IMG/VR virus record: IMGVR_UViG_3300037010_003311
Coordinates: 62,001 to 126,000 of that record
Length of the DNA stretch: 64,000 nt
Strand: one strand, 5' to 3'
Below are positions 9,444 to 50,241 of this stretch, one piece after another. Below the pieces are notes generated by a model. That model was not told the DNA's origin. It worked only from the letters and a program-made list of their open reading frames with translations, and made no database searches. Both the position numbers and the translations under genes were made by a program. How positions within the stretch are numbered: position 1 is the first letter of the stretch; each line of letters opens with the position of its first letter.

Positions 9444-10064
9444 ATGAAATGGATAATTGATAAAAGTTTTAGTTTTTGTTACGGTCATCGGGTTCATAAC
9501 CAAAGACTGGATACTAAGTTTACTGAGTCAGGAGATGCGTGTTTAGCATGTAGACACCTGCATGGCCATGAGGGTCTAGTAAAAGTATTTTTAACTGGAC
9601 CATCGAGTAATGTTAAAACTACAGGAATGGTTACAGATTTTAAACATCTAGGCTGGTTTAAAAATTTTATTGATGATACGCTTGATCATAAATTCATTAT
9701 GGATTTACGAGATCCATTATTCCCATCAGAATTTCCGCTAGTTTGTACACCAACTGGCAAATTAGTACTTGACCGGGTGCATATAATGGACCAAGGGTTT
9801 ATGATTCCAGATCTAACATATATTAAAAATATTATTAATAATGATGAAGTTCTAAAATCGCAAGCGGAAATTGATGCTATTTTTGAAAAATATGAGGGTG
9901 CAGTATTTGTCGATTTCGTACCAACTTCCGAAAATCTTGCAGCCTGGTTATTAAAAGTATGTCAGGAAAAAATGAAAGGTTTAACCGATGTTCAAGTAGT
10001 AGCGGTTGAGTATTGGGAAACTCCAAAATCACATTGTCGGGTACAAGCCACGGACTTAATCTAA
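9444..10064 (+). CDS. queD: 6-carboxy-tetrahydropterin synthase (QueD/PTPS family)
   Basis: FCYGHRV, CRHLHGHEG, MVTDF, LDHKF, PTSENLA, YWETPKSHC. Confidence 0.92.
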   Translation: MKWIIDKSFSFCYGHRVHNQRLDTKFTESGDACLACRHLHGHEGLVKVFLTGPSSNVKTTGMVTDFKHLGWFKNFIDDTLDHKFIMDLRDPLFPSEFPLVCTPTGKLVLDRVHIMDQGFMIPDLTYIKNIINNDEVLKSQAEIDAIFEKYEGAVFVDFVPTSENLAAWLLKVCQEKMKGLTDVQVVAVEYWETPKSHCRVQATDLI

Positions 10065-10082
10065 TAAATCAAAGGAATAACA

Positions 10083-10331
10083 ATGTCACAAATTACAGAA
10101 ACTCAGATCAAAGAGTATGAAGCAAAGAAAGCAAATATCGAAGCACAAATTCAGGCACAGACTAGAGATAAAATTATCTACGAAGAGCAACTTAATCAGT
10201 TAAATGCCCAGTTACTCCAAAACTTTAATACTACTGATCCAGACGAGTTAGATAAAATTGCAGATAGTTACCAACTAGAAATTACTAAACTTGAAACCGA
10301 GTTACAGCAATTAGAATTAGCTAGTGAATAA
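10083..10331 (+). CDS. Small coiled-coil protein
   Basis: 82 aa, heptad-rich Q/E/L sequence, RBS AAGGA, immediately upstream of sbcD. Confidence 0.8.
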   Translation: MSQITETQIKEYEAKKANIEAQIQAQTRDKIIYEEQLNQLNAQLLQNFNTTDPDELDKIADSYQLEITKLETELQQLELASE

Positions 10332-10339
10332 GGATTATT

Positions 10340-11332
10340 ATGCTAAAGTTTATTAGTATAAAAGATCCCCATTTAAGTTTAGGTTTTCAGAATCGGCTTC
10401 GATACGATTACCAAAGTGATATTATGAATAAATTAAATTTTATTCGTAATTATGTAGCAGAGAATCAGGTTGACGCCATTTTATTAACTGGTGATATAAC
10501 TGATTCCAATTATGAACGAAAATGGTCATTTAAACAGTATGTAAAAAATAAGAGAGCATTCCAAGCTTTAAAAGGTAATGGATCTGATGATCATGTACAG
10601 CTATTAAGCTGTATTGGGAACCACGATATGTTTTTTGGTCTCGAAGATGGAAATGATACAGTGTTTGATGAACTGGTACGGGAAAATGTAATTCATAACA
10701 TTACTAATTACCCGAAAGGGTTTACGACACCAAATTCTAATAAAGTGGTAAAAGTATATGGTGTAGATTATTCAAGTAATAAAGAAACTATATTTGAAAA
10801 ACTAAATGTTATAAATAATGATAGTTTTATTAATACTCAATATTTTAAAATTGTAGTTATGCATAACAACCTTACACCGTTACCGGAAAGATTAACTGAA
10901 TTCACTTATGATGAGTTACAGGCTAAGTTTCCAAATATCAATATTTTTATTGGTGGTCACTATCATATAGGTTTTCCCTCGGTTCAAGTAAAAGGTACCT
11001 GGTTTATAAACAATTGGAACCTCACCAGAGTAGTTCGAGATTATGACGTCACTTTAGATCAGCATACGCCAGAGTTTGAAGAAATCACATTCGATGATAA
11101 TTTAAACTTGGTATCAGTAAAGACCATAAAATTGCCGTTTAAGACGTTTGAAGAAACTTTCGTCCCAAACGCAATTAACATTATCAAAAAATCTAAACAG
11201 GAAATTTTTGAATTTTTCCAAATAGATTTTGAAGAGATTGTTACAAAACAAACTGACTTAGAAATTCTAGAGCAGTTTGATTACGAACCAGAAATTATAC
11301 AACTAGCCTTACAATATCTAAATGGTGATTAA
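10340..11332 (+). CDS. sbcD: Mre11/SbcD-like metallophosphoesterase nuclease
   Basis: DPH, LTGDITD, GNHD, VMHN, GHYH motifs. Confidence 0.85.
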   Translation: MLKFISIKDPHLSLGFQNRLRYDYQSDIMNKLNFIRNYVAENQVDAILLTGDITDSNYERKWSFKQYVKNKRAFQALKGNGSDDHVQLLSCIGNHDMFFGLEDGNDTVFDELVRENVIHNITNYPKGFTTPNSNKVVKVYGVDYSSNKETIFEKLNVINNDSFINTQYFKIVVMHNNLTPLPERLTEFTYDELQAKFPNINIFIGGHYHIGFPSVQVKGTWFINNWNLTRVVRDYDVTLDQHTPEFEEITFDDNLNLVSVKTIKLPFKTFEETFVPNAINIIKKSKQEIFEFFQIDFEEIVTKQTDLEILEQFDYEPEIIQLALQYLNGD

Positions 11333-11388
11333 GTTGATAACAAAAAGGGCCATCACTGGTACAAAAGAATATATGGAACGAGGTAAAC

Positions 11389-13017
11389 ATGAAACTTATT
11401 AAAAGCTTCGATGAGGTGCTTTCTAAGGATGATATAATTAAATACCTTAGTGAGCGGGAAGACAATAGCATAACTAGCTGGGATCAAATACCTAGCCCAT
11501 TTATGTTTAAAGACATGCCTAAAGCGATTGCACTTTTTCAAAATGCTTTAGCAACTAACCAAAAAATTAAAATAGTTCACGATAGTGACGCTGATGGTTT
11601 AGGGACCTACCTTGAAAGTTGGCATTTCTTTTCCGCTTTCTATTATCGAAATTTTGAATTTGTAATAGTTGATCGGTCAGAGGGATACGGCCTATTACCT
11701 AAACATATAGAAGAGAATTGTTTGATTATAACTTCTGATAATGGAATAACTGCAAATCCTGCTTGCCAGCATGCAAAAACTGTAACTAACTGTCAGGTAA
11801 TTATAACTGACCATCACCAGGTGGATATGTTTTATGGTGTACCAGAAGCTGACGCTATAATTAACCCATGGGTACCAGGCGAAACATTTCCATTTAAAGA
11901 AATTAATGGGGCGTTTGTTTACTGGTTCTTTTTAAAAGCTATTCAAGAAACCTTCAATTCACAATTTGATATGAAGTCTTTTCTACCGGAATTGACACTT
12001 ACTACTATTTCCGACGTTATGCCACTTATACATATTAATCGATTTATAGTTAAGCAGGGGTTAAAGTATATGCTTACGTCTAACCGACGATGGGTACAAA
12101 CATTTATTAATACTCATAAGCTAACAGAAGTCCTAGCCGATGATCTAGCATTTAAAATAATCCCGAGTATTAACGTAACTAACCGATTAACGAAAGCTGA
12201 TGAATCGGCCCTCTTCTTAATACAGGAAGAATACATAGCTTCTAATCAATGGTTCGGGTATCTAAATAACTTAAATACCCAACGTAAAAAGATGCAGGAA
12301 TCATTACTTAAAACTATTGAAACTAAATATGCTAAATGGTTAGAGTTTGGTTTTATTATCATACCAGGAACTAAGGAAGATGGCTTTCATAAAGGTATAC
12401 TTGGTCCAACTGCTGGTAGATTAGCAGAACGTTATAATAAACCGGCATTGGTATTGATTAATAATGGTGACTATTATAGTGGCTCTGGTCGATCAGTAGG
12501 TGACGTTGATATATTATCTATAGTCAAGTCCAGTCCAAGTGTAGTACAGAATAAAACTGGTGGCCATAAAGTGGCATGTGGTGTAGCAGTAAATACCCAT
12601 GAACTTGGAAACTTTTGGAATCATTGCCAAATGGAAATTGCTAAAATTCCAGCCGAACAATTCGAAGAAACCGAAGCAGTTCTTGGTAAAATAAATATTC
12701 GAGATATTGATTTAGATCTTTATCACAAAATGAAAGAGTTTGAACCATTTGGTCAAAAATATGAAAGGCCGGAATTCTTAGTTCGGGGTAAAGTGAAAAA
12801 TGTGAAGAAGCTTGGTAAAGATGGAACTCATATGCGTTTCATTTTAGAAGATGGTTTGGGAGCTCAAATAAACTGCCTATTCTTTTTCGCTACCGAACCT
12901 ATTAAAGCCAATACAAACTATAGTTTAGTATGTACAATACAACATGATCTATTTAATGGAGCCGATGATGTATGTCTCTATGTTTCTTCAGTTGCTAAAT
13001 TTGAGGATGCCCTTTAG
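11389..13017 (+). CDS. recJ: RecJ-like ssDNA exonuclease (DHH/DHHA1)
   Basis: HDSDADG, TSDNG, TDHH, TISDVMPL, GSGRS, GGHKVACG, EPFGQ. Confidence 0.92.
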   Translation: MKLIKSFDEVLSKDDIIKYLSEREDNSITSWDQIPSPFMFKDMPKAIALFQNALATNQKIKIVHDSDADGLGTYLESWHFFSAFYYRNFEFVIVDRSEGYGLLPKHIEENCLIITSDNGITANPACQHAKTVTNCQVIITDHHQVDMFYGVPEADAIINPWVPGETFPFKEINGAFVYWFFLKAIQETFNSQFDMKSFLPELTLTTISDVMPLIHINRFIVKQGLKYMLTSNRRWVQTFINTHKLTEVLADDLAFKIIPSINVTNRLTKADESALFLIQEEYIASNQWFGYLNNLNTQRKKMQESLLKTIETKYAKWLEFGFIIIPGTKEDGFHKGILGPTAGRLAERYNKPALVLINNGDYYSGSGRSVGDVDILSIVKSSPSVVQNKTGGHKVACGVAVNTHELGNFWNHCQMEIAKIPAEQFEETEAVLGKINIRDIDLDLYHKMKEFEPFGQKYERPEFLVRGKVKNVKKLGKDGTHMRFILEDGLGAQINCLFFFATEPIKANTNYSLVCTIQHDLFNGADDVCLYVSSVAKFEDAL

Positions 13018-13060
13018 ATATTACTAAAATACCGATTTTAGTAATATAGCGATAACTAGT

Positions 13061-13071
13061 AATATAGAAAT
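13061..13071 (+). promoter_or_regulatory. AATATAGAAAT motif
   Basis: Exact 11-mer 44 nt upstream of the RNase H start. Confidence 0.6.
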
Positions 13072-13114
13072 ACTAATTAGAAGCACGCAGTAATTTTAAT
13101 ACAAGTGAGGATAA

Positions 13115-13606
13115 ATGTTTAAAATTTATACGGATGGTAGTTGTATTCATAATGCTAATATTACAAAGATAGCTATTGGGCCAGGTGGTTGGGCATATGC
13201 CCTATATAATAATGATACCTTAGTATTTAAGCATTCTGGTTCAGTCAGGAATACTACTAATGGTAGAATGGAGGTTATGGCAGTACATGAGGCTATTAGA
13301 TTTATCGCTAGTAACCAACAATTGGCTAACCCAAATAGTATTGGTCATCCCGGAGGCTTTGAAATCCTAAGTGATAGTAAATATGCTATTGATGGATTAA
13401 ATATCTGGTTAGATGGTTGGGCAAAGAAAAATTTTTCTGGAATTAAACATCCGGATTTATGGAAAAATATATACCATCTTATTCATAACGATCTAAAATC
13501 GTTGAAAATTACTGGGGTCTGGGTAAAAGGCCATAATGGTGACGAAGGGAACGAAGTTGTAAATGCTTTGGCCCAAGAAGCAGCTTACTCAATTAAAGGA
13601 TTATAA
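13115..13606 (+). CDS. rnhA: Ribonuclease HI
   Basis: YTDGSC, TTNGRMEVMAV, SDSKY, WVKGHNGDEGNEVVNALA (last catalytic Asp appears as Asn). Confidence 0.92.
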   Translation: MFKIYTDGSCIHNANITKIAIGPGGWAYALYNNDTLVFKHSGSVRNTTNGRMEVMAVHEAIRFIASNQQLANPNSIGHPGGFEILSDSKYAIDGLNIWLDGWAKKNFSGIKHPDLWKNIYHLIHNDLKSLKITGVWVKGHNGDEGNEVVNALAQEAAYSIKGL

Positions 13607-14005
13607 ATGGAAATAATAGATGATGATTTAATTAATCAGTTTGATATAAAACAAGAGACTAAACCAAGCAGTTTAGAGAATAAAATTATAACTCGGGAGG
13701 AAATGCCTCAAGTTATAAATAGTTGGTTCAAAATGCTTGAAAATATAATGGTTAATGATATACCATTGATACAAGACGCAAATATCCGGGATTATTCTTT
13801 TACAATAGATCCATCATTAAATATTGAAATATTGCAACGAGTTCTTGGAGTTAAAGAGCAAACGCTTTTTAGTTTCATAAATACACTGTATTTTTATTCA
13901 TTAGATAAAATACTAATTGAACAATTTGGGTCTTATAAATTTATAGGTATTCCAACCGTTATATTTACACCACTGTCCGCTAATAGATTTAGCATTGATT
14001 TTTAA
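13607..14005 (+). CDS. Hypothetical protein
   Basis: 132 aa ORF abutting rnhA. Confidence 0.75.
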   Translation: MEIIDDDLINQFDIKQETKPSSLENKIITREEMPQVINSWFKMLENIMVNDIPLIQDANIRDYSFTIDPSLNIEILQRVLGVKEQTLFSFINTLYFYSLDKILIEQFGSYKFIGIPTVIFTPLSANRFSIDF

Positions 14006-14025
14006 AAATAAAAAAAGGAATTTAA

Positions 14026-14961
14026 ATGGAAATTACAGGAATCGAAATAAACTTAGATAATATACAAGATGTTGAAATGCCAATGGTTGCTCCAGTATTA
14101 GAAATGCCAACTATGCCAATGGTAGCACCAGAGGTAGCAGAAATGCAGATGATTAAACAAGAGATTATCCAAGAAGTTGCTGCACCTACACAAGTAGTAC
14201 CAGTTGCACATAATGATACCAATATCACTATTATTGGTGAGATGAAATCTGCTTACTATGGTGGGTTTGTTAAAATCCTAGAATTCTTAAGTGACAATAT
14301 GGGTTCACAAGATGTTATCTACATTGAAGATGGTAAACTAAGTACTCTAAAAGGTTCTGGTTTTATTTATTGTGATCTAGAATCATTGTTTGGTAAAAAT
14401 AATTTTGAAATTATTGATCCAAAAAATGCAATCAAAAAACTTAAACTCTGCCGAGGTGGAGATTTAGTATCCATTATGGATGTTAAAGATGATAATAAAT
14501 ATCGTGTCGTTAGTTCATTTAAGGGTGAAGCAAACGATATCATTAATATCTTTAAACCACAAACCAAAGATAGTCAATCGGTAAAGGCTCCAACACTAGA
14601 TACTAAAAAATATAGCGTAGAGTTAGAACTTGATATCATTGCCAAATTGATTGAAGCTAAAAAAGCATATGATGCTACATACTATACTTTAGTACTTGAA
14701 AAAGATACATATCGTTTAATCAGTATTGAACTTACTGATAACTATCGCCATAACTTTTCAACTACAACTGCTGAAACAGTAAGTTATAAAGTGTTTGACC
14801 CATTTCCAATTACTAAAGCAGAAGGTATTATTTTTGAGATTTATTCAAATGATGCTGCACAAAAAGTTTATATCCAAACAATTGCTGATGTTAGTATCAC
14901 TAGCATTCGTTATACAGAAATTGCGTCCATTAAAACAGATTTCGATGCTTTCACCATCTAA
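14026..14961 (+). CDS. Probable DNA sliding clamp (T4 gp45/PCNA-like) with acidic, Pro/Met-rich N-terminal extension
   Basis: After about 75 low-complexity aa, a roughly 235-aa region whose pattern (IIDPKNAIKKLKL; KAPT...LELDIIAKLIEA) parallels gp45; clamp loader present at 55477. Confidence 0.5.
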   Translation: MEITGIEINLDNIQDVEMPMVAPVLEMPTMPMVAPEVAEMQMIKQEIIQEVAAPTQVVPVAHNDTNITIIGEMKSAYYGGFVKILEFLSDNMGSQDVIYIEDGKLSTLKGSGFIYCDLESLFGKNNFEIIDPKNAIKKLKLCRGGDLVSIMDVKDDNKYRVVSSFKGEANDIINIFKPQTKDSQSVKAPTLDTKKYSVELELDIIAKLIEAKKAYDATYYTLVLEKDTYRLISIELTDNYRHNFSTTTAETVSYKVFDPFPITKAEGIIFEIYSNDAAQKVYIQTIADVSITSIRYTEIASIKTDFDAFTI

Positions 14962-15006
14962 CTTTTAAATATTAAGATGGGATTAAATCCTAAGAGTGTA
15001 TAATCC

Positions 15007-15036
15007 AGAAGTTTAAGACTACGGTCTTAGCTTCTT
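15007..15036 (+). terminator. Hairpin with cUACGg tetraloop
   Basis: TAAGAC-TACG-GTCTTA plus outer AGAAG/CTTCT, between clamp-like and SWIM genes. Confidence 0.55.
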
Positions 15037-15064
15037 AACCATAAAAAATATTTAAAGGATTAAG

Positions 15065-15460
15065 ATGATACCAGTTTCAAAATTACTTGGCCCTATTAAG
15101 GATGAAAAAACTATGGAAATTAGGGAAACCTATGATCCAGAATGTGCTCACTATATAGTTGTGAATAAAAAATCAAATCATGGTTATAATGTAAAATTTA
15201 TTACCGATAAACCAAACAATAGTATTACCCCAACCTGTAATGTTAAGGTTTCGTGTAATTGTGATAATTTTCAATTTATGTATGCGTATGTATTATATAA
15301 AAATGATGGTTTATATAATCCCCATCGTTTAGTACTGACACCACCAGTTGAGAAAAATCCAAATATGATTATTGGAGCGTGTAAGCATGTAAAATTAGCC
15401 CTCTATAGAAAAATGACTAATAATGTACAAAAACTTGCAACTACGGATGGGGATATCTAA
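15065..15460 (+). CDS. SWIM zinc-finger protein
   Basis: VSCNCDNF...ACKHV (CxC...CxH). Confidence 0.75.
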   Translation: MIPVSKLLGPIKDEKTMEIRETYDPECAHYIVVNKKSNHGYNVKFITDKPNNSITPTCNVKVSCNCDNFQFMYAYVLYKNDGLYNPHRLVLTPPVEKNPNMIIGACKHVKLALYRKMTNNVQKLATTDGDI

Positions 15461-16782
15461 TGGCAATAAAAATAGATTTTACTGAATTTACTTTGGATCT
15501 ACCAGAAGTCAAAGATGCTTCTATTTATAAAACTGGTACTACTAATCACCAGTTTTCGGAAACCGGATTATATTCCGAACAGATTTTTGGTCCATTAAAA
15601 AATTATAAGTGTAGTTGTGGAAACGTAGTATCTAAAATAAATGCTGGTATACGGTGTGAAATATGTAATGTACTTTGTGAATCAGATAAATTACGAAATA
15701 CCCAATTTGCTAGAATAGAATTACCAAAAGGTATTTTTATTATTCTACCTACACTTATAAAAAATTTACATGATATCTTTGGACAGAATCCAATTAAAAG
15801 TATTATGGATAAAGCGCAGTATCAACATAATTGTGACAGACCTTATTATTTTTTAAATAACTTTTCTAAATTAGTAAAGATTCCAGAAAAGGATAAAGAT
15901 AAAGATAACTATCTAAAAGATTATCCAGTTTATGATATATCTTCTTTACATAGATTATTTCAATATCTTAGAGATGAGACTGATGCTTTAGATTCTAGAA
16001 TTTCAAAAAAATATCTAGATTATGTTTTTGTAGATTATGTTTTAGTGCTACCAGTTAATAGTAGACCGATTGTAAAGATTACAAATGAAAAAAGTAATGT
16101 TCATCCAATTACAGAAAAGTATGCGGAAATATTAAAAAATAAGAGCAATAGTCTTGTTGATGACTTTCATGAAATCAATGAAGAGATGTTTGGTGCAACT
16201 GTTTATAAATATCAAAATAGTGTTAATCAGTTATACGATATAATTTTGCAGAAAAACTTTCAGCAGAAAGAAAGCGTGAGTCGTGATTACATGATGGGTA
16301 AAATTATTGAACATTCCGGCCGTTTTGTTATTGTGCCAAATCCAATTCTAAAACCATATCAAATAGGTTTACAATCTCACGCTATCAAAGAGATAAATGT
16401 CCCGGAAATTAAACGATTCATTTATCAAAAATATGCTCAAAACTCAAGTGATGAAAAGATTATGGATTATCTAATAAATATAGATTCTCATAATTCATTT
16501 AGTTCAGTATTTAATATATCTGATGATTTACTAAAAGAATTTTTGGCAGAACAAGCCAAGAATTTAATTTATGTTTGTGAACGCCCACCTGTGTTATGGA
16601 AGTATAACGTTACCGCCTTTTTTCTAGGTTTAGTAAATTGGTCTGAAAAAGATGTTACTAGAGTTATGGTACCATTTACTTCAGTTGTAAAGAAAATAAT
16701 ATCTAAATTCACTAAACCAGACGCGAAGAAAATGAATTATAGAAAATCAATTAAAAGTGTTTCTGTAAATTTTGGTAAGTAG
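15460..16782 (+). CDS. rpoC: Multisubunit RNA polymerase beta' N-terminal piece
   Basis: GLYSEQIFGP, CSCG/CEIC zinc site, VLPVNSRP, MGKIIEHSGRFVI, ERPPVLW. Confidence 0.92.
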   Translation: MAIKIDFTEFTLDLPEVKDASIYKTGTTNHQFSETGLYSEQIFGPLKNYKCSCGNVVSKINAGIRCEICNVLCESDKLRNTQFARIELPKGIFIILPTLIKNLHDIFGQNPIKSIMDKAQYQHNCDRPYYFLNNFSKLVKIPEKDKDKDNYLKDYPVYDISSLHRLFQYLRDETDALDSRISKKYLDYVFVDYVLVLPVNSRPIVKITNEKSNVHPITEKYAEILKNKSNSLVDDFHEINEEMFGATVYKYQNSVNQLYDIILQKNFQQKESVSRDYMMGKIIEHSGRFVIVPNPILKPYQIGLQSHAIKEINVPEIKRFIYQKYAQNSSDEKIMDYLINIDSHNSFSSVFNISDDLLKEFLAEQAKNLIYVCERPPVLWKYNVTAFFLGLVNWSEKDVTRVMVPFTSVVKKIISKFTKPDAKKMNYRKSIKSVSVNFGK

Positions 16783-16863
16783 ATTACAATATTGTATCTA
16801 AGTAGTTAAACGGCTCCAAGAGCTAAACCAAAAACCTATAAAGGCATTAAATGGAAATTTTAA
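16690..16863 (+). pseudogene. Decayed NUMOD1/IENR1-type homing-endonuclease tail at the beta' split
   Basis: The beta'N frame reads KKIISKF...RKSIKSVSVNFGK*ITILYLSS*TAPRAKPKTYKGIKWKF*, resembling NUMOD1 (SI.EA...G....KT.KG..WK) with two internal stops. Confidence 0.5.
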
Positions 16864-18740
16864 ACAATATGGTCATGCATTTAAATAGTTTAAATGCAAA
16901 ACGCTTTAACAGTGACTATGATGGTGATGGTCTTGGGTGTTACTCTTTACATAGTACCCAAGCTAAAAAAGAAGCAAGGCGATATATGACGCCTATATCA
17001 AATATCCAACATGAACACAATCTCGAAATGGTGGATACGCTAGAGCATGAAAGTATTCAAGCGGCATACATGCTTTCGCTTAAGGGATGGAAAAATTTCG
17101 ATTCAAATAAAATCGAATTAACTTTACAAAACATAAGCGAATTCCAAGCAGATATAAATACAGTAATTAAAACTCCAAATATAGCAGTAAGGCTTATAGA
17201 TGAAGATATAGTATTACCATATAATTCTGTTCTAATTAACGCATCATTCGATATAGAAGAGTTAATATATACTGATAGTAGATTATTGTATAAAAAGAAT
17301 TTACTAGAACTGATTAAGCTTTTATACGACTTTGTAGAGAATGCTAAATTTCATGATAAATTACATAACTTCAATAAAGTACTACTTGAATGTAGTACAG
17401 TTGTTAGTTATTGTAATACAAGTTTTGAACTGAATCACTTTGCGGTGAATCATAAAGCAATTGAGGATTTCAAAAAAACACTTATAAATGAACCATTTAC
17501 TGGTTTCCATCAAAACCAAATGCTATTTGATACACATGTTAAAAATCTTATTTGTCATGATGAAGATAATATTCTAACGAATGTATTCAATTCTGGAGCA
17601 AGGATCAAAAATGTACAGTTGTTAAAAGCTGCTAGTAATAATGGTATCCCAACTGATATTAATGGTAGAGCATTTAAGCATAATATTAAAAACTCATTAC
17701 TTGATGGATTAACCGAAGAAGAGTTCTTTATGACTGGGGATAGTGCAAGACTAGCCTTAGCTCAAAGGCAAGATTCTATTCCAAAGGGTGGTGAACTTCA
17801 ACGGAAGATATATTTTACAACTGGATTCTTGCAACTCAATAATATTGCAGATTGTGGATCAGAAAAATATTTTACAATAGTGGTTAGTGATAGACATCAT
17901 TTAGCTTCCTTATATGGAAGATGGTATATTACTGATGATAATCCAAAACTACGTTTCGTTCGTTTAGATGATACTAAATTAATTGGTACGGAAATTAAAG
18001 TTCGTTCCCCAATTTATTGTAAGTCTGGTGATTATGCTATTTGTGATAGATGCTTTGGTTCTAAAAAACCAGATTCAGATAACATTGGTGCAGCTATTGG
18101 ATCATATATTGCGGAAAGTATCATTCAGTCAATTCTTAGAACTCACCACTTTAGTGGAGCTTTCATTACTGAGATTAAAAAAGAATTCAATGAAATTATT
18201 GAATCGTTACAATTCGAATCACCTAACATTATAAAAGGTAGTCCAGAAAATATTGATCGGTATAAACAATATCTTTTAGATAATTACTATAAGGAAGAAG
18301 ATTTTACTATAACCAAAACTAGTAAAAACTGCTACGAAATTGATGTTATTAATTTACCATTAAATGATGACTCTGTTAAAAAACTACAGGTTATTACTTC
18401 ATATATTGATAAGAATCGAGATAGTGATAATTTGATTTCACCAGAAGAGATATATAAATTTCTTAAAAATGAAATCATTATGCCTAATGATATTTTGAGT
18501 ATATATGTTGAATTAATTATTGGTATTCTATTTTACGATGAAGATGGTATTATGATTAGATATTCTGATAAAGAGATTAACTTCCAGTTGGCTTTAAAGA
18601 ATGTTATTTCGCATATTGATCCAAGAATGTCTTTCTTCTATGGATTCAACGATGGTAAGATTAGTGATTGTTATGATGCCGAAACCGAGGGAACGGTCCT
18701 AAAACATATGTATCAGGATTTAACTGATATCTATTATTAA
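16851..18740 (+). CDS. rpoC: Multisubunit RNA polymerase beta' C-terminal piece (catalytic)
   Basis: RFNSDYDGD (NADFDGD equivalent), bridge helix GELQRKI, DCGS, RSPIYC...CDRCFG, trigger loop IAESIIQSILRTHH. Confidence 0.95.
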   Translation: MEILNNMVMHLNSLNAKRFNSDYDGDGLGCYSLHSTQAKKEARRYMTPISNIQHEHNLEMVDTLEHESIQAAYMLSLKGWKNFDSNKIELTLQNISEFQADINTVIKTPNIAVRLIDEDIVLPYNSVLINASFDIEELIYTDSRLLYKKNLLELIKLLYDFVENAKFHDKLHNFNKVLLECSTVVSYCNTSFELNHFAVNHKAIEDFKKTLINEPFTGFHQNQMLFDTHVKNLICHDEDNILTNVFNSGARIKNVQLLKAASNNGIPTDINGRAFKHNIKNSLLDGLTEEEFFMTGDSARLALAQRQDSIPKGGELQRKIYFTTGFLQLNNIADCGSEKYFTIVVSDRHHLASLYGRWYITDDNPKLRFVRLDDTKLIGTEIKVRSPIYCKSGDYAICDRCFGSKKPDSDNIGAAIGSYIAESIIQSILRTHHFSGAFITEIKKEFNEIIESLQFESPNIIKGSPENIDRYKQYLLDNYYKEEDFTITKTSKNCYEIDVINLPLNDDSVKKLQVITSYIDKNRDSDNLISPEEIYKFLKNEIIMPNDILSIYVELIIGILFYDEDGIMIRYSDKEINFQLALKNVISHIDPRMSFFYGFNDGKISDCYDAETEGTVLKHMYQDLTDIYY

Positions 18741-18749
18741 GGGTATCTA

Positions 18750-19013
18750 ATGAATAATAATCTAGATAAAATTGCATCTAAGAACCAAACTAAACGATTG
18801 GTGCTTATTAATGGTTTAGGAGATACCGAAGTAGATTATATTTTGGAAGATGATAACATCGATAATGCAATCTATTATCTTTTATGCGCGAGGAACCATT
18901 TAATTGAACATAGTGATTTTCCATTAACCGCTTTAACTAGATTAGAGATTGCAGCAGCTGCAATCAGCCAAGCAATAATGGAAGTGGAAGCTAAAACAAT
19001 TTTCAGGACATGA
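18750..19013 (+). CDS. Hypothetical protein within RNAP cluster
   Basis: 87 aa, RBS AAGGG. Confidence 0.7.
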   Translation: MNNNLDKIASKNQTKRLVLINGLGDTEVDYILEDDNIDNAIYYLLCARNHLIEHSDFPLTALTRLEIAAAAISQAIMEVEAKTIFRT

Positions 19014-19025
19014 GGGAGATAAAGA

Positions 19026-20300
19026 ATGAATTTAATACCAACTAAAGTGAGAACCGTATCCAATTCGGAATGGTACGCTATCCCAGATTTTAGAAAGGAT
19101 GATCATTATAAAGTACTAGATATATTAAACGATATGTTTAAAAAGTTATCTAATTATTTTAACATCACTTATAAAATTGATTTTATAAATAAACTTGATG
19201 ATGATAAAACTTACTTGAGCGAGTATGCTACATATATGAACTTGATAGTAATAAATCTTGCAGTAAATGGTGTACCAGAGAAACCTATAAAAATCCGTTA
19301 TCCAGCTTTAGTGAATGATAACTTCTTTATTATGAATGGTAGTATCTATGTACCACTTATGTTTTTAGAAAGAAGTCCGATCGATAGAATAAATGAAATA
19401 GATGAAACAACTGGTAAAAATATTGGCCGTATATTATTAAATATTTTACCATCATTTAATATTACATTTGATTTCGTGAATGAACGTATTCTTTATCGTG
19501 GTAAAAAAGCTATTACGACTAATATGTTTTTTAGTCTTATTTATAATAGGCCCGAAGATCAGGAGTATGTTAAATACCTCATTGATAATGGTATTATGAC
19601 AGATTTCTTTGATTCTGTTTCGGAAGAGGATATGAAAACATTTATTAAATCCTTCGATCTTAAATCACTAAACATTTTAAAAAATGAAGAACCAATCAGC
19701 ATTGTAGATTTCTTCGATGAGTTATTATTACTTGATTACTTTAAAGGAATGTTTGAAAAAATCTATGGTGTTAGTACCATTCGGGAGATCTTAAAAATTA
19801 TAGTCAATTACTATTTGAATGATACATTTATTGATATGTCTGATCTTAGAAATAGGCGTATAGTTGTTAATGAATATCTTATTAATCCTATATTTGAATA
19901 CTATTTAAGATTCCTGAGAAATATTACGGAGAAACATGACCCAGATGCGAAAAAAGTTTTTAGTCCTACTATGAATCCACAAGTTGTTATAACTAGTGGT
20001 TTTAGAGGTATGATGCATGGTGGTTCACATTATAATATTTCATTACCATATCCAACACCATTACTTTATAAGGTGTCTCAAAGCATTTATATTGTTGGGG
20101 AAAAGGTACCAAGAAGTTGGACGAGTAATCATCCAAGTGCTTATGGTAAAATATGCCCAATTTCGGTATCTGCTCAAAACATGGGAGAAAACCTAGTATT
20201 TACTAGTGATGTTCGTTTAGATAAATATGGCCTAATAGAAGGTACTAAAGCTATTTTAGTTGAGCGACAAGAGGATGATGTAGATGCACCCAAAACTTAA
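19026..20300 (+). CDS. rpoB: Multisubunit RNA polymerase beta N-terminal piece
   Basis: FFIMNGSIYVPLMFLERSP and HPSAYGKICPI match FIINGTERV..QLHRSP and HPTHYGRICPI. Confidence 0.85.
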   Translation: MNLIPTKVRTVSNSEWYAIPDFRKDDHYKVLDILNDMFKKLSNYFNITYKIDFINKLDDDKTYLSEYATYMNLIVINLAVNGVPEKPIKIRYPALVNDNFFIMNGSIYVPLMFLERSPIDRINEIDETTGKNIGRILLNILPSFNITFDFVNERILYRGKKAITTNMFFSLIYNRPEDQEYVKYLIDNGIMTDFFDSVSEEDMKTFIKSFDLKSLNILKNEEPISIVDFFDELLLLDYFKGMFEKIYGVSTIREILKIIVNYYLNDTFIDMSDLRNRRIVVNEYLINPIFEYYLRFLRNITEKHDPDAKKVFSPTMNPQVVITSGFRGMMHGGSHYNISLPYPTPLLYKVSQSIYIVGEKVPRSWTSNHPSAYGKICPISVSAQNMGENLVFTSDVRLDKYGLIEGTKAILVERQEDDVDAPKT

Positions 20301-21165
20301 AAATATTTTAGAATTTAGTTATAAGTATAGTAATATTTATGACTGTTCTACGCCAAGTTTTGGCCCTTATGATTATCAGCTTTTAGAAAAAAAATTATCT
20401 GAAAATATGGATAACTATCGCGATGTGTATACTATGATGGCAAATACACTTTTTGGTGATGGCGAAAATATAAATATTTTAGAAGTTTTAAATTATGCTG
20501 TTATGCATAGTGCTCTCCAATATAATTTTTGGTATGGTTCTCCAGATTATAAACCATTTAATAGTGGTATAATAACCGAGTATATAATTGGAAAAGATTA
20601 CCAGAAACTAGAGGATATTATAAAAAATAGTGTTATTGGTTTTATACCAGATCGATTAGAAACCTTAAATAATTTAAGAACTTTATTGAGCAATGGTTAT
20701 TTAGAATCGCGGTTTTTCGCAAAAAATTTTAATCTCCACGATTTTATAGATTTTTTATTAGAACAAAAATGTTTTAATAATGATCCACTGTTTAAAAAAG
20801 GTATCTTAGTTATAATGGAGGTTAGACGTATACTTGACCATTGGCCAAATAAGGATGATAGTATTTATCGAAAGCTGGATAAAACTTTCGACACCGTAGA
20901 AATATCGACTTATCCAATCCCGGCCGATTACCGAATCCCGGAATACTTAGCAAGCGTCGGAGCTCAAACCGAGACTCTAAATAAATATGTAATCGAAAAT
21001 AGTATTGAAGAAATAGGCATTCGAACAACTTCAATACGTTTAATAAACGAATTACATCAAATAAGTAAACTTCCAACCTATGTCCTAGATTCATTAATCT
21101 TTATAGATCATAAAGTTAATAAATCAGAATCCAAACATCATCTTTGTATGACAACTAACTATTAA
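20284..21165 (+). CDS. Queuosine-salvage Qng1/DUF2419-like N-glycosylase/hydrolase
   Basis: ALQYNFW, DPLFKKGIL, PADYRIPEYL, EEIGIRTTSI, VLDSLIF and C-terminal HHLCMTTNY follow the order and spacing of the DUF2419 motifs (NFcFW, KRAQ, ADYrvP, EveIR, iD..lW, hHrtr..yY). Confidence 0.75.
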   Translation: MHPKLKNILEFSYKYSNIYDCSTPSFGPYDYQLLEKKLSENMDNYRDVYTMMANTLFGDGENINILEVLNYAVMHSALQYNFWYGSPDYKPFNSGIITEYIIGKDYQKLEDIIKNSVIGFIPDRLETLNNLRTLLSNGYLESRFFAKNFNLHDFIDFLLEQKCFNNDPLFKKGILVIMEVRRILDHWPNKDDSIYRKLDKTFDTVEISTYPIPADYRIPEYLASVGAQTETLNKYVIENSIEEIGIRTTSIRLINELHQISKLPTYVLDSLIFIDHKVNKSESKHHLCMTTNY

Positions 21166-21179
21166 AAAGGAAAATAATT

Positions 21180-21851: not shown

Positions 21852-21863
21852 ATAACTTATTTA

Positions 21864-21893
21864 GGGGGGGGTACAGTTATTGTACCTCTTTTT
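21864..21893 (+). terminator. Intrinsic terminator
   Basis: GGGGGTACA-GTTAT-TGTACCTC stem followed by TTTTT. Confidence 0.8.
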
Positions 21894-21930
21894 ATACCTA
21901 AAAATATAAATTAAAGTTTAAAGGAAATAA

Positions 21931-36350: not shown

Positions 36351-36358
36351 AACTATTT

Positions 36359-36414: not shown

Positions 36415-36449
36415 TTATTTGGAATTTTTTTTGTTTTTTTGGGCAGGAA

Positions 36450-36480: not shown

Positions 36481-36486
36481 ATATGC

Positions 36487-38733: not shown

Positions 38734-38743
38734 CTTTTACCCT

Positions 38744-39121: not shown

Positions 39122-39151
39122 TGAACATTCCTTTTTAATATTTTAGTTTAT

Positions 39152-39679: not shown

Positions 39680-39701
39680 TATTTACCTTTCTTTTTTCGC
39701 A

Positions 39702-41403: not shown

Positions 41404-41417
41404 TAAAAACCTTTTTA

Positions 41418-41708
41418 TTAATTAGTATATGATAATGGAGCAGTACCAAGAAGTATACCATTGCCACAACCAACTACTACAGAACCAGTTAATGCAACTG
41501 GTAATCCAGTGGAGAACTCCATAACTGAACCAGTAGTTATAACAGAAGAACCACAAGGAAATATTAGTACTGAACCAACAGTTGCAACCGGTAACCCGTT
41601 CTCCATATATAATGGAGACCCACTAATTACTAACCCAACCGCTGGATATGGATTTGGTGAACATACGCAAGTTCCAAATGCGGTCGAATTGACTAGCCCT
41701 AGATTCAT
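41418..41708 (-). CDS. PAAR-like baseplate spike tip protein
   Basis: 96 aa, repeated NG/TG-LPVA-xxGS motifs with Cys ligands. Confidence 0.85.
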   Translation of the reverse strand: MNLGLVNSTAFGTCVCSPNPYPAVGLVISGSPLYMENGLPVATVGSVLIFPCGSSVITTGSVMEFSTGLPVALTGSVVVGCGNGILLGTAPLSYTN

Positions 41709-41718
41709 AATTATTCCT

Positions 41719-46611: not shown

Positions 46612-46636
46612 AATATTCCTTTAAATTTTATTTAAC

Positions 46637-47986
46637 TTATATAGTTATTGGTGTTGGTAGTGGAGGTAGAGTTACATTATTTCCGGCAACATTATATCCA
46701 TTAATATAACTTACTGACATATTTGCGCCATCTAATGTAATTGGTACTAGAGTTGGTAAAGAAATTAAATTATTAGCTGGATTAGCTGAACCAGTTAACG
46801 AACCATTTAAAATATTAGCAATTGAACCAGATACTGGATCGTTGGTACCCATTGCCGTAACCATGCTTGCTGCGGCAAGCTCCGTAGAAAGTGATAAACC
46901 TTTTTGAGTAAGGTTCATACTAGTTGCACTAGAACGTGCAAATTGCATATTAGATAGTATAACACCATCTTGTAATGTAGTAGCACTATTATTAACCGTT
47001 AATGGAGCATCGTTAGTTATAACACCAGATGTATTAGTATAATTCAGACTACTCATATAAAGATTAGCTAAAGCAGTAGTTTCCACCATAAGACTACTAA
47101 GACTTAATTTTAATAAAGCGTCTATTTTAATATGCCCACCTTTAATGTAAGTTTCTAGCATACTATCAATAGAAACAACATTACCGGTAAGATTCAGCAT
47201 TTGTGCACCAGATATTTTGGTATTAGTACTATATACATCTACCGTTTCTATTCCAGTAAGATAAGTATTGTTGCCAATAAGATTTAAATTTTTAGTGCTA
47301 TTTAAAGTGATATCACCGTTTGAACCATATTTAATACCATTTTCAGTTATTTGGATATAGGAAGCACTTTTAGTTCCAGCACTTAATATTATACCACTAG
47401 CATCCATACGAATGAAGTTATCTAGGTATTTAAAAATCATACCAGAATCTGATATCTCAGCTATACATTCATCAGTAATACCATCAGTTCCACCATTTTT
47501 TAATTCCCCTACATGAAGAACTATTTTATCAGAATCAAGTAATACATTGGTCTTACCACCAGCATTCATCATATGAATAATTTCGCGATTATCATCTATA
47601 TAAATATACGAATTGTTTACTGACTTACAAAGCAAATAAAAATCATTTTTTAATTTATCATTTAATGGTAATAAACCCTGGGCATTTAAAATTTTAGATA
47701 CATAACCATCTGATATATCGGTAGTACGAAATATTACTTCAACTATCATTCCAATAGCTAATGGGAAATATGAACCAGCAGACCGCTTTGCACTAGCTTG
47801 TGAGGCATGCTGTCTTGGATCTATCCATCTGGAAAAATTATTACCAGCTATTTCATTAGTTGCCCAAAAAATATTTTTTTGACCAGGCGAAGAAAGACTT
47901 CTTATATAAATTGGAAATTTATTATGCTTTTCTAAATCTATTCCATCAAGTACTATACCAATATATGGTTTGCCTTTTTCAATCAT
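46637..47986 (-). CDS. Baseplate central spike (gp5/VgrG-like)
   Basis: N-terminal OB-like YIGIV.D..D...GSYFP..IG..VEVIF followed by beta-helix I.L.S/G repeats; upstream of PAAR gene. Confidence 0.75.
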   Translation of the reverse strand: MIEKGKPYIGIVLDGIDLEKHNKFPIYIRSLSSPGQKNIFWATNEIAGNNFSRWIDPRQHASQASAKRSAGSYFPLAIGMIVEVIFRTTDISDGYVSKILNAQGLLPLNDKLKNDFYLLCKSVNNSYIYIDDNREIIHMMNAGGKTNVLLDSDKIVLHVGELKNGGTDGITDECIAEISDSGMIFKYLDNFIRMDASGIILSAGTKSASYIQITENGIKYGSNGDITLNSTKNLNLIGNNTYLTGIETVDVYSTNTKISGAQMLNLTGNVVSIDSMLETYIKGGHIKIDALLKLSLSSLMVETTALANLYMSSLNYTNTSGVITNDAPLTVNNSATTLQDGVILSNMQFARSSATSMNLTQKGLSLSTELAAASMVTAMGTNDPVSGSIANILNGSLTGSANPANNLISLPTLVPITLDGANMSVSYINGYNVAGNNVTLPPLPTPITI

Positions 47987-48033
47987 TATTGTTTCCTCTT
48001 CCTGTAAATTAATACCGGTTACTTATAACCTAT

Positions 48034-48075
48034 TTGTTTTTCGACGACAGGAAAACGGTCGAAAACCGACCGTTA
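48034..48075 (-). terminator. Hairpin plus TCCTGTCG element
   Basis: - strand: TAA overlapping AACGGTCG-GTTTT-CGACCGTT, then TTCCTGTCGTCGAAAAAC. Confidence 0.6.
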
Positions 48076-49503
48076 ACATATTAGCTTTTGCATATTTTTT
48101 ATACTAGCTTGGATCTGAGAATAATAAGTATCTAACCCAATTAATTCTCTATTGAATTCATCATTTATAAAATTATTAGGATTCAATTTATTAATGATTT
48201 CATCAGTTAAGATTTTGCATATCTCATCTACTGATTCTGGATCATCAATTAATTCCTTCAGCCTAACAGAAAGTTGTTGATTAACTATATCTTGTGTAAA
48301 TAGTTTTAAGGATTGATTACCTTTTTTAGTATAAAGATTATTTATTCTAAAAAGATTTACTAAAGGTTCTTCGCTATTATTAGTAGCTTTTAAAAACTTA
48401 CCATAATAGTGCATATAGTCGAGTATTGGGATCTTATTGTCATAAGTATGTAGGAAGTCATAATAATTTATATCGAAGAAATTATTACTGTATTCATCCA
48501 TTAAAAACTCATATCCATCTTTTAAGAATCTTTTATTCTCCATACAATAAGTTAGCATCATTGCATCCATAACCATTTGATTAGTATTAGATGAATAACT
48601 ATTTAAATCCTGAGCAAAGTTTTCCTCAAAGAGGGAATCTAGTTGTTTAAAATAACCAGCTTTAACCTTTGAAAGCTTCGCTCCATAAAAACTAAATAAG
48701 TTAGTATGAATTAATCCAGTATATGTTGCAAAAATTGCTCGGAGATAGATTGGATTCATATTTTTAATAGCAGTAAATGCTAAATATTTTAAAACTTTTT
48801 CAATGATTGTTTCTGTGGTAATCATAAGAATATTATAATAGAAAGATCCAATTTTGGTTCTGGCATTATATTTAATTAGGTTTTGTTCTATCATTGATTG
48901 GAGCGTTAAAACGAAAAATGAAAGCTGTTCATATTTTCCGAGCACTTGGATTAATTCATATCTAAATAGTTCAATTGGCATTTTATAACCACGAACATTT
49001 TTAATACTATGCTTTTCGAGAAATGCTTTTGCGCGAATTTCAAGATTTTTTATTAGATAGTGAAATGCAATAAGATCAATCTTATTAATAGATTTCCCCT
49101 CAAACATTGTGAACTGAATATCCGAATTTATATTATTAAGAATTTCGATATTGATATTATAAGAGGCTTCATCTTCGAAATCAGATATAGGTCTAGCTAA
49201 TTCAGCTTCTATACCACCAAGAATGCGTTCCCTGGAGACTTCAAGTATCTCTCTATATAATTCATCATTGAATAATACTTCGTGATGCTTTTCATGTCTT
49301 TTAAGATTTTTGAGCATATGCTCTTCGTTTAGAACATCATCTAAACGTTTATTTATAAAAAATTCAATTTCGACATCTATATTGTATTTATTGAGAAACT
49401 TTTTTACTTCGGCTTCTACTACTTTAGTGTCAACATTGATTTTATGTTCTCGTTTATCACCAATTACTTTACCTTCCGGTAACTCTTTTTTTCTTTTTGC
49501 CAT
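48073..49503 (-). CDS. Hypothetical helical protein
   Basis: 476 aa, no recognised motif. Confidence 0.8.
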   Translation of the reverse strand: MAKRKKELPEGKVIGDKREHKINVDTKVVEAEVKKFLNKYNIDVEIEFFINKRLDDVLNEEHMLKNLKRHEKHHEVLFNDELYREILEVSRERILGGIEAELARPISDFEDEASYNINIEILNNINSDIQFTMFEGKSINKIDLIAFHYLIKNLEIRAKAFLEKHSIKNVRGYKMPIELFRYELIQVLGKYEQLSFFVLTLQSMIEQNLIKYNARTKIGSFYYNILMITTETIIEKVLKYLAFTAIKNMNPIYLRAIFATYTGLIHTNLFSFYGAKLSKVKAGYFKQLDSLFEENFAQDLNSYSSNTNQMVMDAMMLTYCMENKRFLKDGYEFLMDEYSNNFFDINYYDFLHTYDNKIPILDYMHYYGKFLKATNNSEEPLVNLFRINNLYTKKGNQSLKLFTQDIVNQQLSVRLKELIDDPESVDEICKILTDEIINKLNPNNFINDEFNRELIGLDTYYSQIQASIKNMQKLIC

Positions 49504-49530
49504 ATTTACCCAATTAACATATCAAGGTGA

Positions 49531-50241
49531 TTAAGCCTTGATATTTGAAATATTATCTATTGATTTCATTTTTACTTTACTATTGATTGGTACCACCACT
49601 TCTGGTTTAGCTAAACTCTCGACCGTAAAGTAATTTGGATTATTATCTTCCGATCTTTTTTCAAGATATTTTACTTCTAGTTTTCCAGAAGGATTCTCCA
49701 CACAGGTAGTGGTTTTCATATACTCTTGATACTCTTCATCCCAAGGGAATATAAGCCAATTATCATCAGATATGGTTTCAGATGAATAAAAAGTACCATT
49801 TAAAAAATCTGGTTCCCATGCCATTCCAGTCGGCTTATAAAAAACGGTATATGTATCAATTATTATCGTTTCTTTTAATACAGTTTTTAGATATTCGACT
49901 ACAGCTGTCAGAGTTGCACCAGTATCATAAATATCATCAACTACTAGAATTCGTCTAACATTATTTAATCTACTAATGTTTGATTTATCGAGATTTTGTA
50001 CAGTTACCTTATCCTTTACGCTATTCGTTTTCGGATTAAATAATTCAGCGTTTATTGGTATAAGCTTATTTATTTTCATTTTATATGAAATTAAAGTAGC
50101 TGGAATATTACCACCTCTTTGTATCGGTATGATATAATCATATTCAAATGCTGCATCAGAGCATTGTGTAATAAAATTATCAACATGCTCTATTATATCA
50201 CCAAATGAAATTATCGTTTTATCGTCTACGGCCCAACTCAT
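49531..50241 (-). CDS. Type I phosphoribosyltransferase (Gpt/Hpt-like)
   Basis: IIPIQRGG, ILVVDDIYDTGATL, WLIFPWD. Confidence 0.92.
   Translation of the reverse strand: MSWAVDDKTIISFGDIIEHVDNFITQCSDAAFEYDYIIPIQRGGNIPATLISYKMKINKLIPINAELFNPKTNSVKDKVTVQNLDKSNISRLNNVRRILVVDDIYDTGATLTAVVEYLKTVLKETIIIDTYTVFYKPTGMAWEPDFLNGTFYSSETISDDNWLIFPWDEEYQEYMKTTTCVENPSGKLEVKYLEKRSEDNNPNYFTVESLAKPEVVVPINSKVKMKSIDNISNIKA

Follow-up and report, generated by a model that had tools for sequence, protein, structure and literature searches.

Dispersed 7-deazaguanine genes in an uncultured jumbo phage, with a predicted role in DNA modification

We have analysed a window of 64,000 nucleotides, positions 62,001 to 126,000 of the IMG/VR virus record IMGVR_UViG_3300037010_003311, together with the remainder of this 226.7-kb phage record, which is 81% complete. 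The window contains a QueD-like gene directly after thyX, a distant Qng1/DUF2419 homologue, a GAT-QueC fusion with a putative amidotransferase domain, and a Gpt-type purine phosphoribosyltransferase (PRTase) directly downstream of nrdA and nrdB (Table 1). An earlier note, made from the sequence alone, had listed these four genes and had recognised no transglycosylase, FolE or QueE in the window; that observation is confirmed on both counts. These enzymes are, however, encoded elsewhere in the record, since FolE, QueE, a second stand-alone QueC and a divergent protein with a predicted TGT fold, followed by a DUF6884 DNA-binding protein, all lie upstream of the window, such that the gene set is scattered over about 110 kb.

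Table 1 Features of the window and of the upstream part of the same record (window position = genome position minus 62000)
Feature	Window position	Genome position	Strand	Description
ThyX	8808–9428			Directly before QueD
QueD	9444–10064		+	QueD-like 6-carboxytetrahydropterin synthase, 206 aa
Qng1-like	20284–21165		+	Distant Qng1/DUF2419 (Q_salvage) homologue, 293 aa; predicted N-glycosidase for 7-deazaguanine nucleoside 5'-monophosphates
GAT-QueC	28835–30271		+	478 aa; divergent N-terminal Ntn-type amidotransferase-like domain plus QueC PP-loop domain
PRTase	49531–50241		-	Gpt-type 6-oxopurine phosphoribosyltransferase, 236 aa, with a 65-aa C-terminal extension
NrdB	50253–51332		-	Ribonucleotide reductase small subunit
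NrdA	51344–53617		-	Class I ribonucleotide reductase large subunit with ATP-cone
QueC		3804–4565	+	Stand-alone QueC
FolE		47611–48378	+	FolE
QueE		51541–52383	+	QueE
DpdAx		57415–58737	+	Predicted TGT-fold, DpdA-like protein, 440 aa; the ORF could start at 57373
DUF6884		58923–59387	+	DUF6884 DNA-binding protein

The QueD assignment rests on matches to PF01242 (E 4e-25; 88.6 bits against a cut-off of 22.4) and phrog_2389 (E 1e-31), whilst the match to TIGR03367 (E 3e-14) falls below the equivalog cut-off. The 330-aa ORF after QueD is a calcineurin-like phosphoesterase. In the GAT-QueC fusion the QueC domain covers residues 242–474 (PF06508, E 3e-29), with the PP-loop motif SGGLD at 247–251 and the cysteine cluster CGVCGSC near the C-terminus. 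The N-terminal part is more divergent. The protein starts MCSF, so that a cysteine is present at position 2, and residues 94–476 align to Gat-QueC of Pseudomonas phage MiCath at E 3e-21, residues 94–240 falling on its GAT part; however, residues 1–240 gave no hit in HMM or PDB searches and the HNGTI motif is reduced to HGTI. Upstream of the window, the stand-alone QueC matches PF06508 (E 1.4e-27), FolE matches PF01227 (E 5.7e-35) and QueE matches phrog_2076 (E 3e-31). NrdB matches PF00268 (E 2e-63) and NrdA matches PF02867 (E 1e-92), PF03477 and PF00317. No riboswitch was found with Rfam in the window or upstream of it.

The Qng1-like protein is not recognised on its own, failing Pfam, PHROG and NCBIfam, and a six-frame search with PF10343 gave nothing. 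A profile built from its 25 nearest relatives, by contrast, matches the solved Qng1/DUF2419 structures (7uk3 and 7u07) end to end at E 3e-22, and 23 of these 25 relatives hit PF10343. The ESM Atlas gives a feature score of 0.94 and TM values of 0.78–0.82 to Q_salvage clusters. Of the residues characteristic of the HhH-glycosylase fold (Lys199, Asp231, Asp298, Trp302 and the C-terminal Tyr323 in StQng1 numbering), the catalytic residues and the tyrosine are retained as K171, D215, D269 and Y293, which are invariant, and the tryptophan is replaced by Phe273. Single-sequence searches of IMG/VR found no close relatives of either this protein or GAT-QueC.

The PRTase starts 11 nt after NrdB and NrdA on the same strand. 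It matches PF00156 (E 1.4e-13) and its best NCBIfam match is the xanthine PRT model NF006613 (E 8e-14), although it lies below the NCBIfam equivalog cut-offs. A profile of its family matches the Pyrococcus horikoshii purine PRT 1vdm at E 8.5e-29 and E. coli XGPRT (1a95) at E 7e-18, and the protein carries VVDDIYDTGAT, RGGNIPA and WLIFPW at the positions of the PRPP motif, the loop and the C-terminal motif of Gpt. This places it in the Gpt/XGPRT family, whose known substrate is guanine or xanthine.

In the search for a transglycosylase, PF01702, PF23859, PF20314, DpdA3 and DpdA4 were all without hits in the genome, although the DpdA3 profile found the copy in Campylobacter phage F379, used as a positive control, at E 9e-18. 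The 426-aa ORF right after QueE was considered and rejected, since its Atlas structure, a poor model, looks like a baseplate/gpD-like protein and it has no PDB hit. The 440-aa protein that we call DpdAx is missed by every HMM library, and Pfam finds nothing in any of 32 relatives, only weak hits to phrog_887 appearing in 8 of the 32 (best 1e-4). An HMM search of the family against PDB and an hhalign comparison with DpdA3 also gave nothing. Its AlphaFold2 model (pLDDT 88), however, returned only tRNA-guanine transglycosylases among the 50 best Foldseek matches in PDB (E 1e-5 to 1e-4, prob 1.0, TM 0.41–0.51), and the Atlas likewise supports a TGT fold. The motifs follow the TGT order DSGGF...GGLVG...HWLG...ADSS, and D73 in DSGGF and D249 in ADSS, corresponding to the acid/base and nucleophile aspartates (D95 and D256 in S. 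Montevideo DpdA; PMC10164549), are invariant in the 32 relatives; D249 aligns to CDSS of MiCath DpdA, but only in a weak hhalign match (E 0.075). The structural Zn site CXCX2CX22H is absent, as there is a single cysteine (C95) in the protein and no invariant cysteine in the family. DpdAx thus has the predicted fold and catalytic aspartates of the TGT/DpdA superfamily but has no significant match to the described subfamilies (bDpdA, DpdA1–4). Its relatives lie between FolE/QueE and QueD in two other contigs, and next to DUF6884 in one of them. The adjacent protein matches PF21818 (DUF6884) at E 6e-38; phmmer did not find DUF6884 fused into the long DpdAx relatives.

The earlier note regarded the linkage of its four genes as hypothetical because they are not clustered, and named co-occurrence across related jumbo phages as a check. 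The linkage holds up in other phages. Only 9 of 50,697 GenBank phage records match the PRTase, whereas a QueE query matches 106, and at least 6 of the 9 (the Flavobacterium immuto records, Brevundimonas MaInes and Synechococcus BUCT-ZZ01) have it inside or beside FolE/QueD/QueE. One of these is Flavobacterium phage immuto_2-6A, whose guanine is fully replaced. In IMG/VR, 63 of 80 PRTase loci have a Que gene within 10 kb and 53 within 1 kb, a count that is biased upward because the alignment used for the scan was seeded partly with PRTases from Que clusters. A strong phrog_2076 QueE hit occurs in 34 of 45 whole records. Qng1-like genes sit next to QueC, the PRTase, NrdA or DpdAx in other viral contigs, and 8 of 26 viral records with a relative also carry QueC. 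One locus (L135) clusters FolE-QueD-PRTase-QueC-Qng1-like, a second has QueC-Qng1-like and a third Qng1-like-DpdAx. The 288-aa ORF upstream of QueC in L135 was examined as a possible DpdA but showed no similarity. The nearest relative by capsid (G001, 52% identity) shares QueD and the PRTase-NrdA arrangement, the PRTase again lying directly downstream of nrdAB, but not QueC, FolE, QueE or Qng1; as its contig starts right at QueD and is 65% complete, this comparison is uninformative.

These data bear on one alternative, that the PRTase and the Qng1-like protein are general nucleotide-salvage auxiliary genes that merely share a genome with the Que genes. In its favour, the genes are 10–30 kb apart here, the PRTase sits with nrdAB, the Qng1-like gene lies in a conserved block with RNA-polymerase-like genes and several Qng1-like loci show no Que gene nearby. 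The clustering of these families with Que genes in many unrelated phages is, however, far above background, and we consider this explanation unlikely. Still less likely is a supply of queuosine or archaeosine precursors for tRNA; the earlier note had left the queuosine case open. Qng1 is a queuine-salvage enzyme in cells (PMC9881137) and QueC, QueD and QueE are tRNA-pathway enzymes, but no tRNA-type TGT was found (PF01702 gave no hit), the three phage tRNAs are Ala-UGC, Val-UAC and Gln-UUG, which are not queuosine targets, DpdAx is paired with the DNA-binding DUF6884 and phages encoding Gat-QueC that have been tested modify DNA (PMC6884629).

We therefore favour, with moderate confidence, a system that replaces guanine in the phage's own DNA with a 7-deazaguanine base after replication. 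Homology shows that FolE, QueD, QueE and QueC would convert GTP to preQ0, that the putative GAT-QueC fusion is of the type linked to archaeosine-type (G+) products, and that a divergent protein of predicted TGT fold sits next to a DUF6884 protein 4.6 kb upstream of the window. The remainder, including all enzyme activities and substrates and the modification of the DNA itself, is inferred from sequence and predicted structure alone. In this view DpdAx would exchange guanine in double-stranded DNA for preQ0, possibly helped by DUF6884, and GAT-QueC would then finish the base, most likely as dG+, although dPreQ0 or dADG are possible instead because the amidotransferase domain is degenerate. The PRTase, inferred to be co-transcribed with nrdAB, would turn the guanine released by base exchange back into GMP, refilling the GTP that FolE consumes. 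The Qng1-like enzyme would cleave 7-deazaguanine ribonucleoside 5'-monophosphates, arising from host Q-tRNA turnover or from preQ0 phosphoribosylated by mistake by the PRTase, back to free base, which would thus be kept for DpdAx and kept out of RNA. Against this view, DpdAx matches no TGT or DpdA HMM at significance and lacks the DpdA Zn site, the GAT domain has lost the HNG motif and the record is incomplete. The recycling and clean-up roles are inference only, and a PRTase and a nucleotide glycosidase working on the same base would form a futile cycle.

The earlier note had also raised a PRTase-RNR nucleotide route, which is not excluded but which we regard as no more than tentative. Here the PRTase would attach the 7-deazaguanine base (CDG, preQ0 or ADG) to PRPP, as ToyH and TubE do in toyocamycin and tubercidin biosynthesis; kinases and the adjacent NrdAB would give the deoxynucleotide for incorporation by the phage polymerase, and DpdAx would be auxiliary or would proofread. 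ToyH and TubE are likewise encoded together with GTP cyclohydrolase I, QueD-like and QueE-like enzymes, in pathways that make secreted nucleoside antibiotics, not DNA. In favour of this route, besides its place in Que clusters and beside nrdAB, the PRTase co-occurs with DpdA3-type systems (17 of 46 records) but never with PF01702-type DpdA (0 of 45); DpdA3 phages show 100% replacement (PMC10516641). dNMP or thymidylate kinases sit beside it in MaInes and immuto, and one complete 236-kb phage (G016) has FolE-QueD-QueE-QueC-QueF plus the PRTase and no detectable DpdA. Against this route are the Gpt family membership of the PRTase, the presence of a predicted TGT-fold enzyme beside a DNA-binding partner, the Qng1-like hydrolase, which would undo the product, and the absence of the PRTase from Campylobacter phages with 100% dADG; searches of this record for Thymidylate_kin and MazG homologues, as hints of pool editing, also found none. 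The interpretation in the note is thus partly supported: the four genes do belong to one 7-deazaguanine system and DNA modification is the best reading, but with FolE, QueE, a second QueC and DpdAx encoded upstream, a transglycosylase-free route is not required here.

A broader possibility, which we consider unlikely, is that in phages that replace most or all of their guanine the Gpt-like PRTase and the Qng1-like enzyme form an undescribed nucleotide-level arm of the pathway, in which the deazapurine enters the pool as a nucleotide. This could occur through PRTase plus RNR, or through the Qng1-like enzyme acting as a retaining base-exchange enzyme on (d)GMP, with the PRTase recycling the released guanine. 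7-Deazaguanine DNA would then be made at least partly before replication, contrary to the current view that all such modifications are post-replicative.

Phage 7-deazaguanine DNA is a known counter-measure to restriction, but how some phages reach complete guanine replacement is unsettled, and DpdA is currently treated as the sole signature enzyme. The locus adds three recurrent components, a Gpt-type PRTase, a phage Qng1-like predicted nucleotide glycosidase and a predicted TGT-fold family that is invisible to existing HMMs and paired with DUF6884. None is mentioned in the two main phage survey papers checked, and full-text searches found no paper, in the collection searched, linking them to this pathway. 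Searches that rely on Pfam TGT/DpdA models will also miss systems of this kind. As the PRTase is present in a cultured, chemically characterised phage (immuto_2-6A), the pre- versus post-replicative question is open to direct test.

Comparison with known proteins and systems places these components as follows. The PRTase shares with E. coli Gpt and archaeal 6-oxopurine PRTases (1a95, 1vdm, 4z1o) the RGGxxPA loop, the VVDDIxDTGxT PRPP motif and the WIxFPW C-terminal motif, but differs in its C-terminal extension and in its recurrent placement inside phage FolE/QueD/QueE clusters. The Qng1-like protein is co-linear over its whole length with the queuosine-5'-monophosphate glycosylase Qng1 (7u07; PMC9881137) and keeps the HhH Lys and Asp, the base-recognising Asp and the C-terminal Tyr, but at 20–25% identity, and it is encoded by a phage next to deazaguanine synthesis genes rather than serving queuine salvage for tRNA. 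The DpdA3 systems with complete guanine replacement (Cellulophaga phiST, Flavobacterium immuto_2-6A and Campylobacter CP220; PMC10516641) similarly have a divergent transglycosylase that Pfam TGT misses, are found in low-GC phages with large genomes and, in the immuto phages, carry the same PRTase family inside the cluster; DpdAx, at 440 aa against about 260 aa, is not similar to DpdA3 by hhalign. The phage 9g-type dG+ system (FolE, QueD, QueE, Gat-QueC, DpdA1; PMC6884629) has the same biosynthetic enzymes, including a GAT-QueC fusion, whose amidotransferase domain is only putative in the present phage, plus a TGT-superfamily enzyme, and the predicted outcome is likewise a 7-deazaguanine in DNA that protects against restriction. 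The present system differs from it in that the genes are dispersed rather than in one operon, there is an extra stand-alone QueC, the predicted transglycosylase is not DpdA1 and has no PF01702 hit, and a PRTase, a Qng1-like protein and DUF6884 are added.

The record analysed is a linear IMG/VR virus record of 226,657 bp with a GC content of 31.9%, which CheckV estimates to be 81% complete. It is a tailed jumbo phage with terminase, major head and sheath genes. It has no close relative among 50,697 GenBank phages, and its nearest relative in IMG/VR (G001) shares 52% capsid identity. Two large HNH/homing-endonuclease-like ORFs lie among the structural genes, and downstream of the window seven further radical-SAM ORFs, five of them above the Pfam cut-off, are found within about 15 kb; several of these are shared by G001.

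The observation in the earlier note, that QueD, a Qng1-like hydrolase, a GAT-QueC fusion and a purine PRTase beside the ribonucleotide reductase genes are present in the window, is confirmed, and all four genes are real (see the table). The GAT-QueC protein has Cys2, an SGGLD PP-loop and a CGVCGSC cluster. ThyX (flavin-dependent thymidylate synthase) sits directly upstream of QueD, and the same ThyX-QueD pair occurs in the 291-kb contig L159. The PRTase starts 11 nt after NrdB, which follows NrdA. In G001 the ORF upstream of the PRTase is 1247 aa long, against 757 aa for NrdA here, which may reflect an intein or a fusion.

Positions of the features in the window, elsewhere in the record (genome coordinates, for features outside bases 62001-126000) and in other viral contigs
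Feature	Coordinates	Strand	Database match
ThyX	window 8808-9428
QueD	window 9444-10064		PF01242 E 4e-25
Conserved block upstream of Qng1-like	window 10340-20300
Qng1-like, 293 aa	window 20284-21165
GAT-QueC	window 28835-30271		QueC domain E 3e-29
PRTase	window 49531-50241	-	PF00156 E 1.4e-13
Second, stand-alone QueC	genome 3804-4565		PF06508 E 1.4e-27
FolE	genome 47611-48378		E 6e-35
Split family B DNA polymerase ORFs (upstream of the window)	genome 48419-51089 (L010:5419-8089)
QueE	genome 51541-52383		phrog_2076 E 3e-31
DpdAx, transglycosylase candidate	genome 57373-58737		phrog_887 E 1e-3 (weak)
HNH/homing-endonuclease-like ORF	genome 135121-136686		phrog_3339 E 2e-87
HNH/homing-endonuclease-like ORF	genome 146294-147709		phrog_3339 E 1e-65
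Seven radical-SAM ORFs (downstream of the window)	genome about 172-187 kb (L011, L022, L023)
ORF upstream of the PRTase in G001	L028:12187-15930
Methyltransf_23 protein in contig L135	L135:7333-7974
508-aa ORF in another PRTase-bearing contig	L124 = G043:C1:17894-18319		DpdAx profile E 5e-5 (weak)

The Qng1-like ORF matches no HMM library on its own. An exhaustive phmmer search gave 31 representatives, and a profile of 25 of them matches the solved Qng1/DUF2419 structures from end to end with E 3e-22; 23 of the 25 hit PF10343. The ESM Atlas agrees, with a score of 0.94 and TM 0.78-0.82. The residues that define Qng1 (Lys199, Asp231, Asp298 and the C-terminal Tyr323; PMC9881137) correspond to invariant K171, D215, D269 and Y293, whilst Trp302 is a Phe. 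The conserved C-terminal tail, which in Qng1 sits in the active site and helps block the DNA cleft, argues for a nucleotide substrate rather than DNA.

The genes missing from the window are present elsewhere in the genome, where FolE, QueE and a second, stand-alone QueC were found. The family B DNA polymerase upstream of the window is split into several ORFs, two of which carry the N- and C-terminal halves of an intein splicing domain, suggesting a split intein or a split polymerase; Campylobacter phage F379 also has a split polymerase beside QueC and FolE. Searches of the genome with Pfam TGT, Pfam DpdA and DUF6610 (DpdA4) found nothing, and neither did a DpdA3 profile built from Cellulophaga phiST CGPG_00065 and 28 relatives, although the same profile does find the F379 copy, which Pfam TGT misses, at E 9e-18.

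A weak phrog_887 hit did, however, point to an ORF that we term DpdAx. The ESM Atlas placed it with viral TGT/DpdA clusters (features 0.91-0.96, TM 0.55-0.79). Its family is large and wholly unannotated, with no Pfam hit in 32 members and phrog_887, in 8 of the 32, as the only recurrent PHROG hit, and it conserves DSGGF, GGLVG, HWLG and ADSS in the TGT order. The 50 best PDB matches to an AlphaFold2 model (pLDDT 88, pTM 0.87) are all tRNA-guanine transglycosylases (E 1e-5 to 1e-4, prob 1.0, TM 0.41-0.51). The protein has a single Cys and so lacks the DpdA zinc site (PMC10164549), and tblastn gave no hit in GenBank phages. A 508-aa ORF in another PRTase-bearing contig matches the DpdAx profile weakly and may be a still more divergent member of the family. 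The gene following DpdAx is DUF6884 (E 6e-38), a YaaA-like DNA-binding protein predicted to flip bases. In a 291.6-kb contig the order FolE ... QueE ... DpdAx-DUF6884-RNase T ... ThyX-QueD repeats the arrangement in this genome, and in a 37.7-kb contig DpdAx lies between QueE and QueD. We read DpdAx as a predicted TGT-superfamily DNA transglycosylase outside the described subfamilies.

The family profile of the PRTase best matches archaeal purine PRTases and E. coli XGPRT. Only 9 GenBank phage records match it, compared with 106 of 50,697 for a QueE query. The four Flavobacterium immuto records carry it between QueE and FolE, in the cluster with DpdA3, a formyltransferase, a thymidylate kinase and QueF, and in the cultured phage immuto_2-6A it is gp211; Brevundimonas phage MaInes has NrdB-NrdA-dNMP kinase-FolE-PRTase with QueE nearby; and Synechococcus phage BUCT-ZZ01 has QueE-PRTase-x-QueD-FolE. 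Of 80 PRTase loci retrieved from IMG/VR, 63 have at least one Que gene within 10 kb, 53 within 1 kb, and 30 have FolE+QueD+QueE. Four of the six seed sequences for that scan came from Que clusters, so that the count is biased upward, but the unbiased single-sequence tblastn points the same way. QueE is confirmed by phrog_2076 at E 1e-31 or better in 34 of 45 whole records. None of the 45 has a PF01702 TGT, while 17 of 46 have DpdA3. The two main survey papers on phage 7-deazaguanines do not mention a phosphoribosyltransferase.

The main rival to base exchange in DNA is a PRTase-RNR nucleotide route, which we consider possible but doubtful. In its favour are the exclusive association with complete-replacement systems, the neighbouring dNMP kinases, and a complete jumbo phage, G016 (L090, IMGVR_UViG_3300022664_000223; 236,368 bp, direct terminal repeats, 100% complete), which has FolE, QueD, QueE, QueC, QueF and the PRTase within 5 kb but no hit to PF01702, the DpdA3 profile or the DpdAx profile. 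G016 is a candidate for a transglycosylase-free route or for yet another DpdA type. Against the nucleotide route are the usual substrate of the Gpt family, the presence of DpdAx, and the lack of MazG or thymidylate-kinase homologues in the present record.

Of 26 IMG/VR records with a relative of the Qng1-like protein (Qng1L), 8 carry QueC and none carries PF01702. Within 10 kb, contig L135 has FolE-QueD-PRTase-...-QueC-Qng1L on one strand, L143 and L144 have PRTase-QueC-QueD...Qng1L, L134 has QueC-Qng1L, L150 has QueE...Qng1L-DpdAx, and in five loci Qng1L is immediately upstream of NrdA. In L135 a Methyltransf_23 protein, which could be a DpdM-like base methylase, lies two genes upstream of QueC. 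In the closest relatives of this phage, however, the gene sits in a conserved block with RNA-polymerase-like genes, and several other loci show no Que gene nearby. Here the block upstream of Qng1-like contains a calcineurin-like phosphoesterase, a 542-aa ORF whose counterpart in the syntenic relative contigs is annotated RecJ-like DHH, a 163-aa ORF whose counterpart there is RNase H, and then large ORFs with faint RNA polymerase Rpb1 similarity; it is syntenic in the contigs of three relatives.

The reading we favour, with somewhat better than even confidence, is that GTP is converted to preQ0, which DpdAx, perhaps with DUF6884, would exchange for guanine in DNA. GAT-QueC would then give an archaeosine-type base, although its amidotransferase domain is degenerate. 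In this view the PRTase would return the released guanine to GMP/GTP, and Qng1-like would return deazaguanine nucleotides to free base. It is the homologies and gene associations alone that the analysis demonstrates, whereas every one of these reactions, and with them the substrates of the PRTase and the Qng1-like protein, is inferred. Supplying tRNA is unlikely, the phage tRNAs being Ala, Val and Gln only.

The interpretation in the earlier note, which proposed DNA modification with base salvage or pool editing, possibly through a PRTase-RNR route, or alternatively a supply of queuosine precursors for tRNA, is supported in part. With three accessory components that we did not find described in the literature examined, the system differs from those already known, while being of the same kind.
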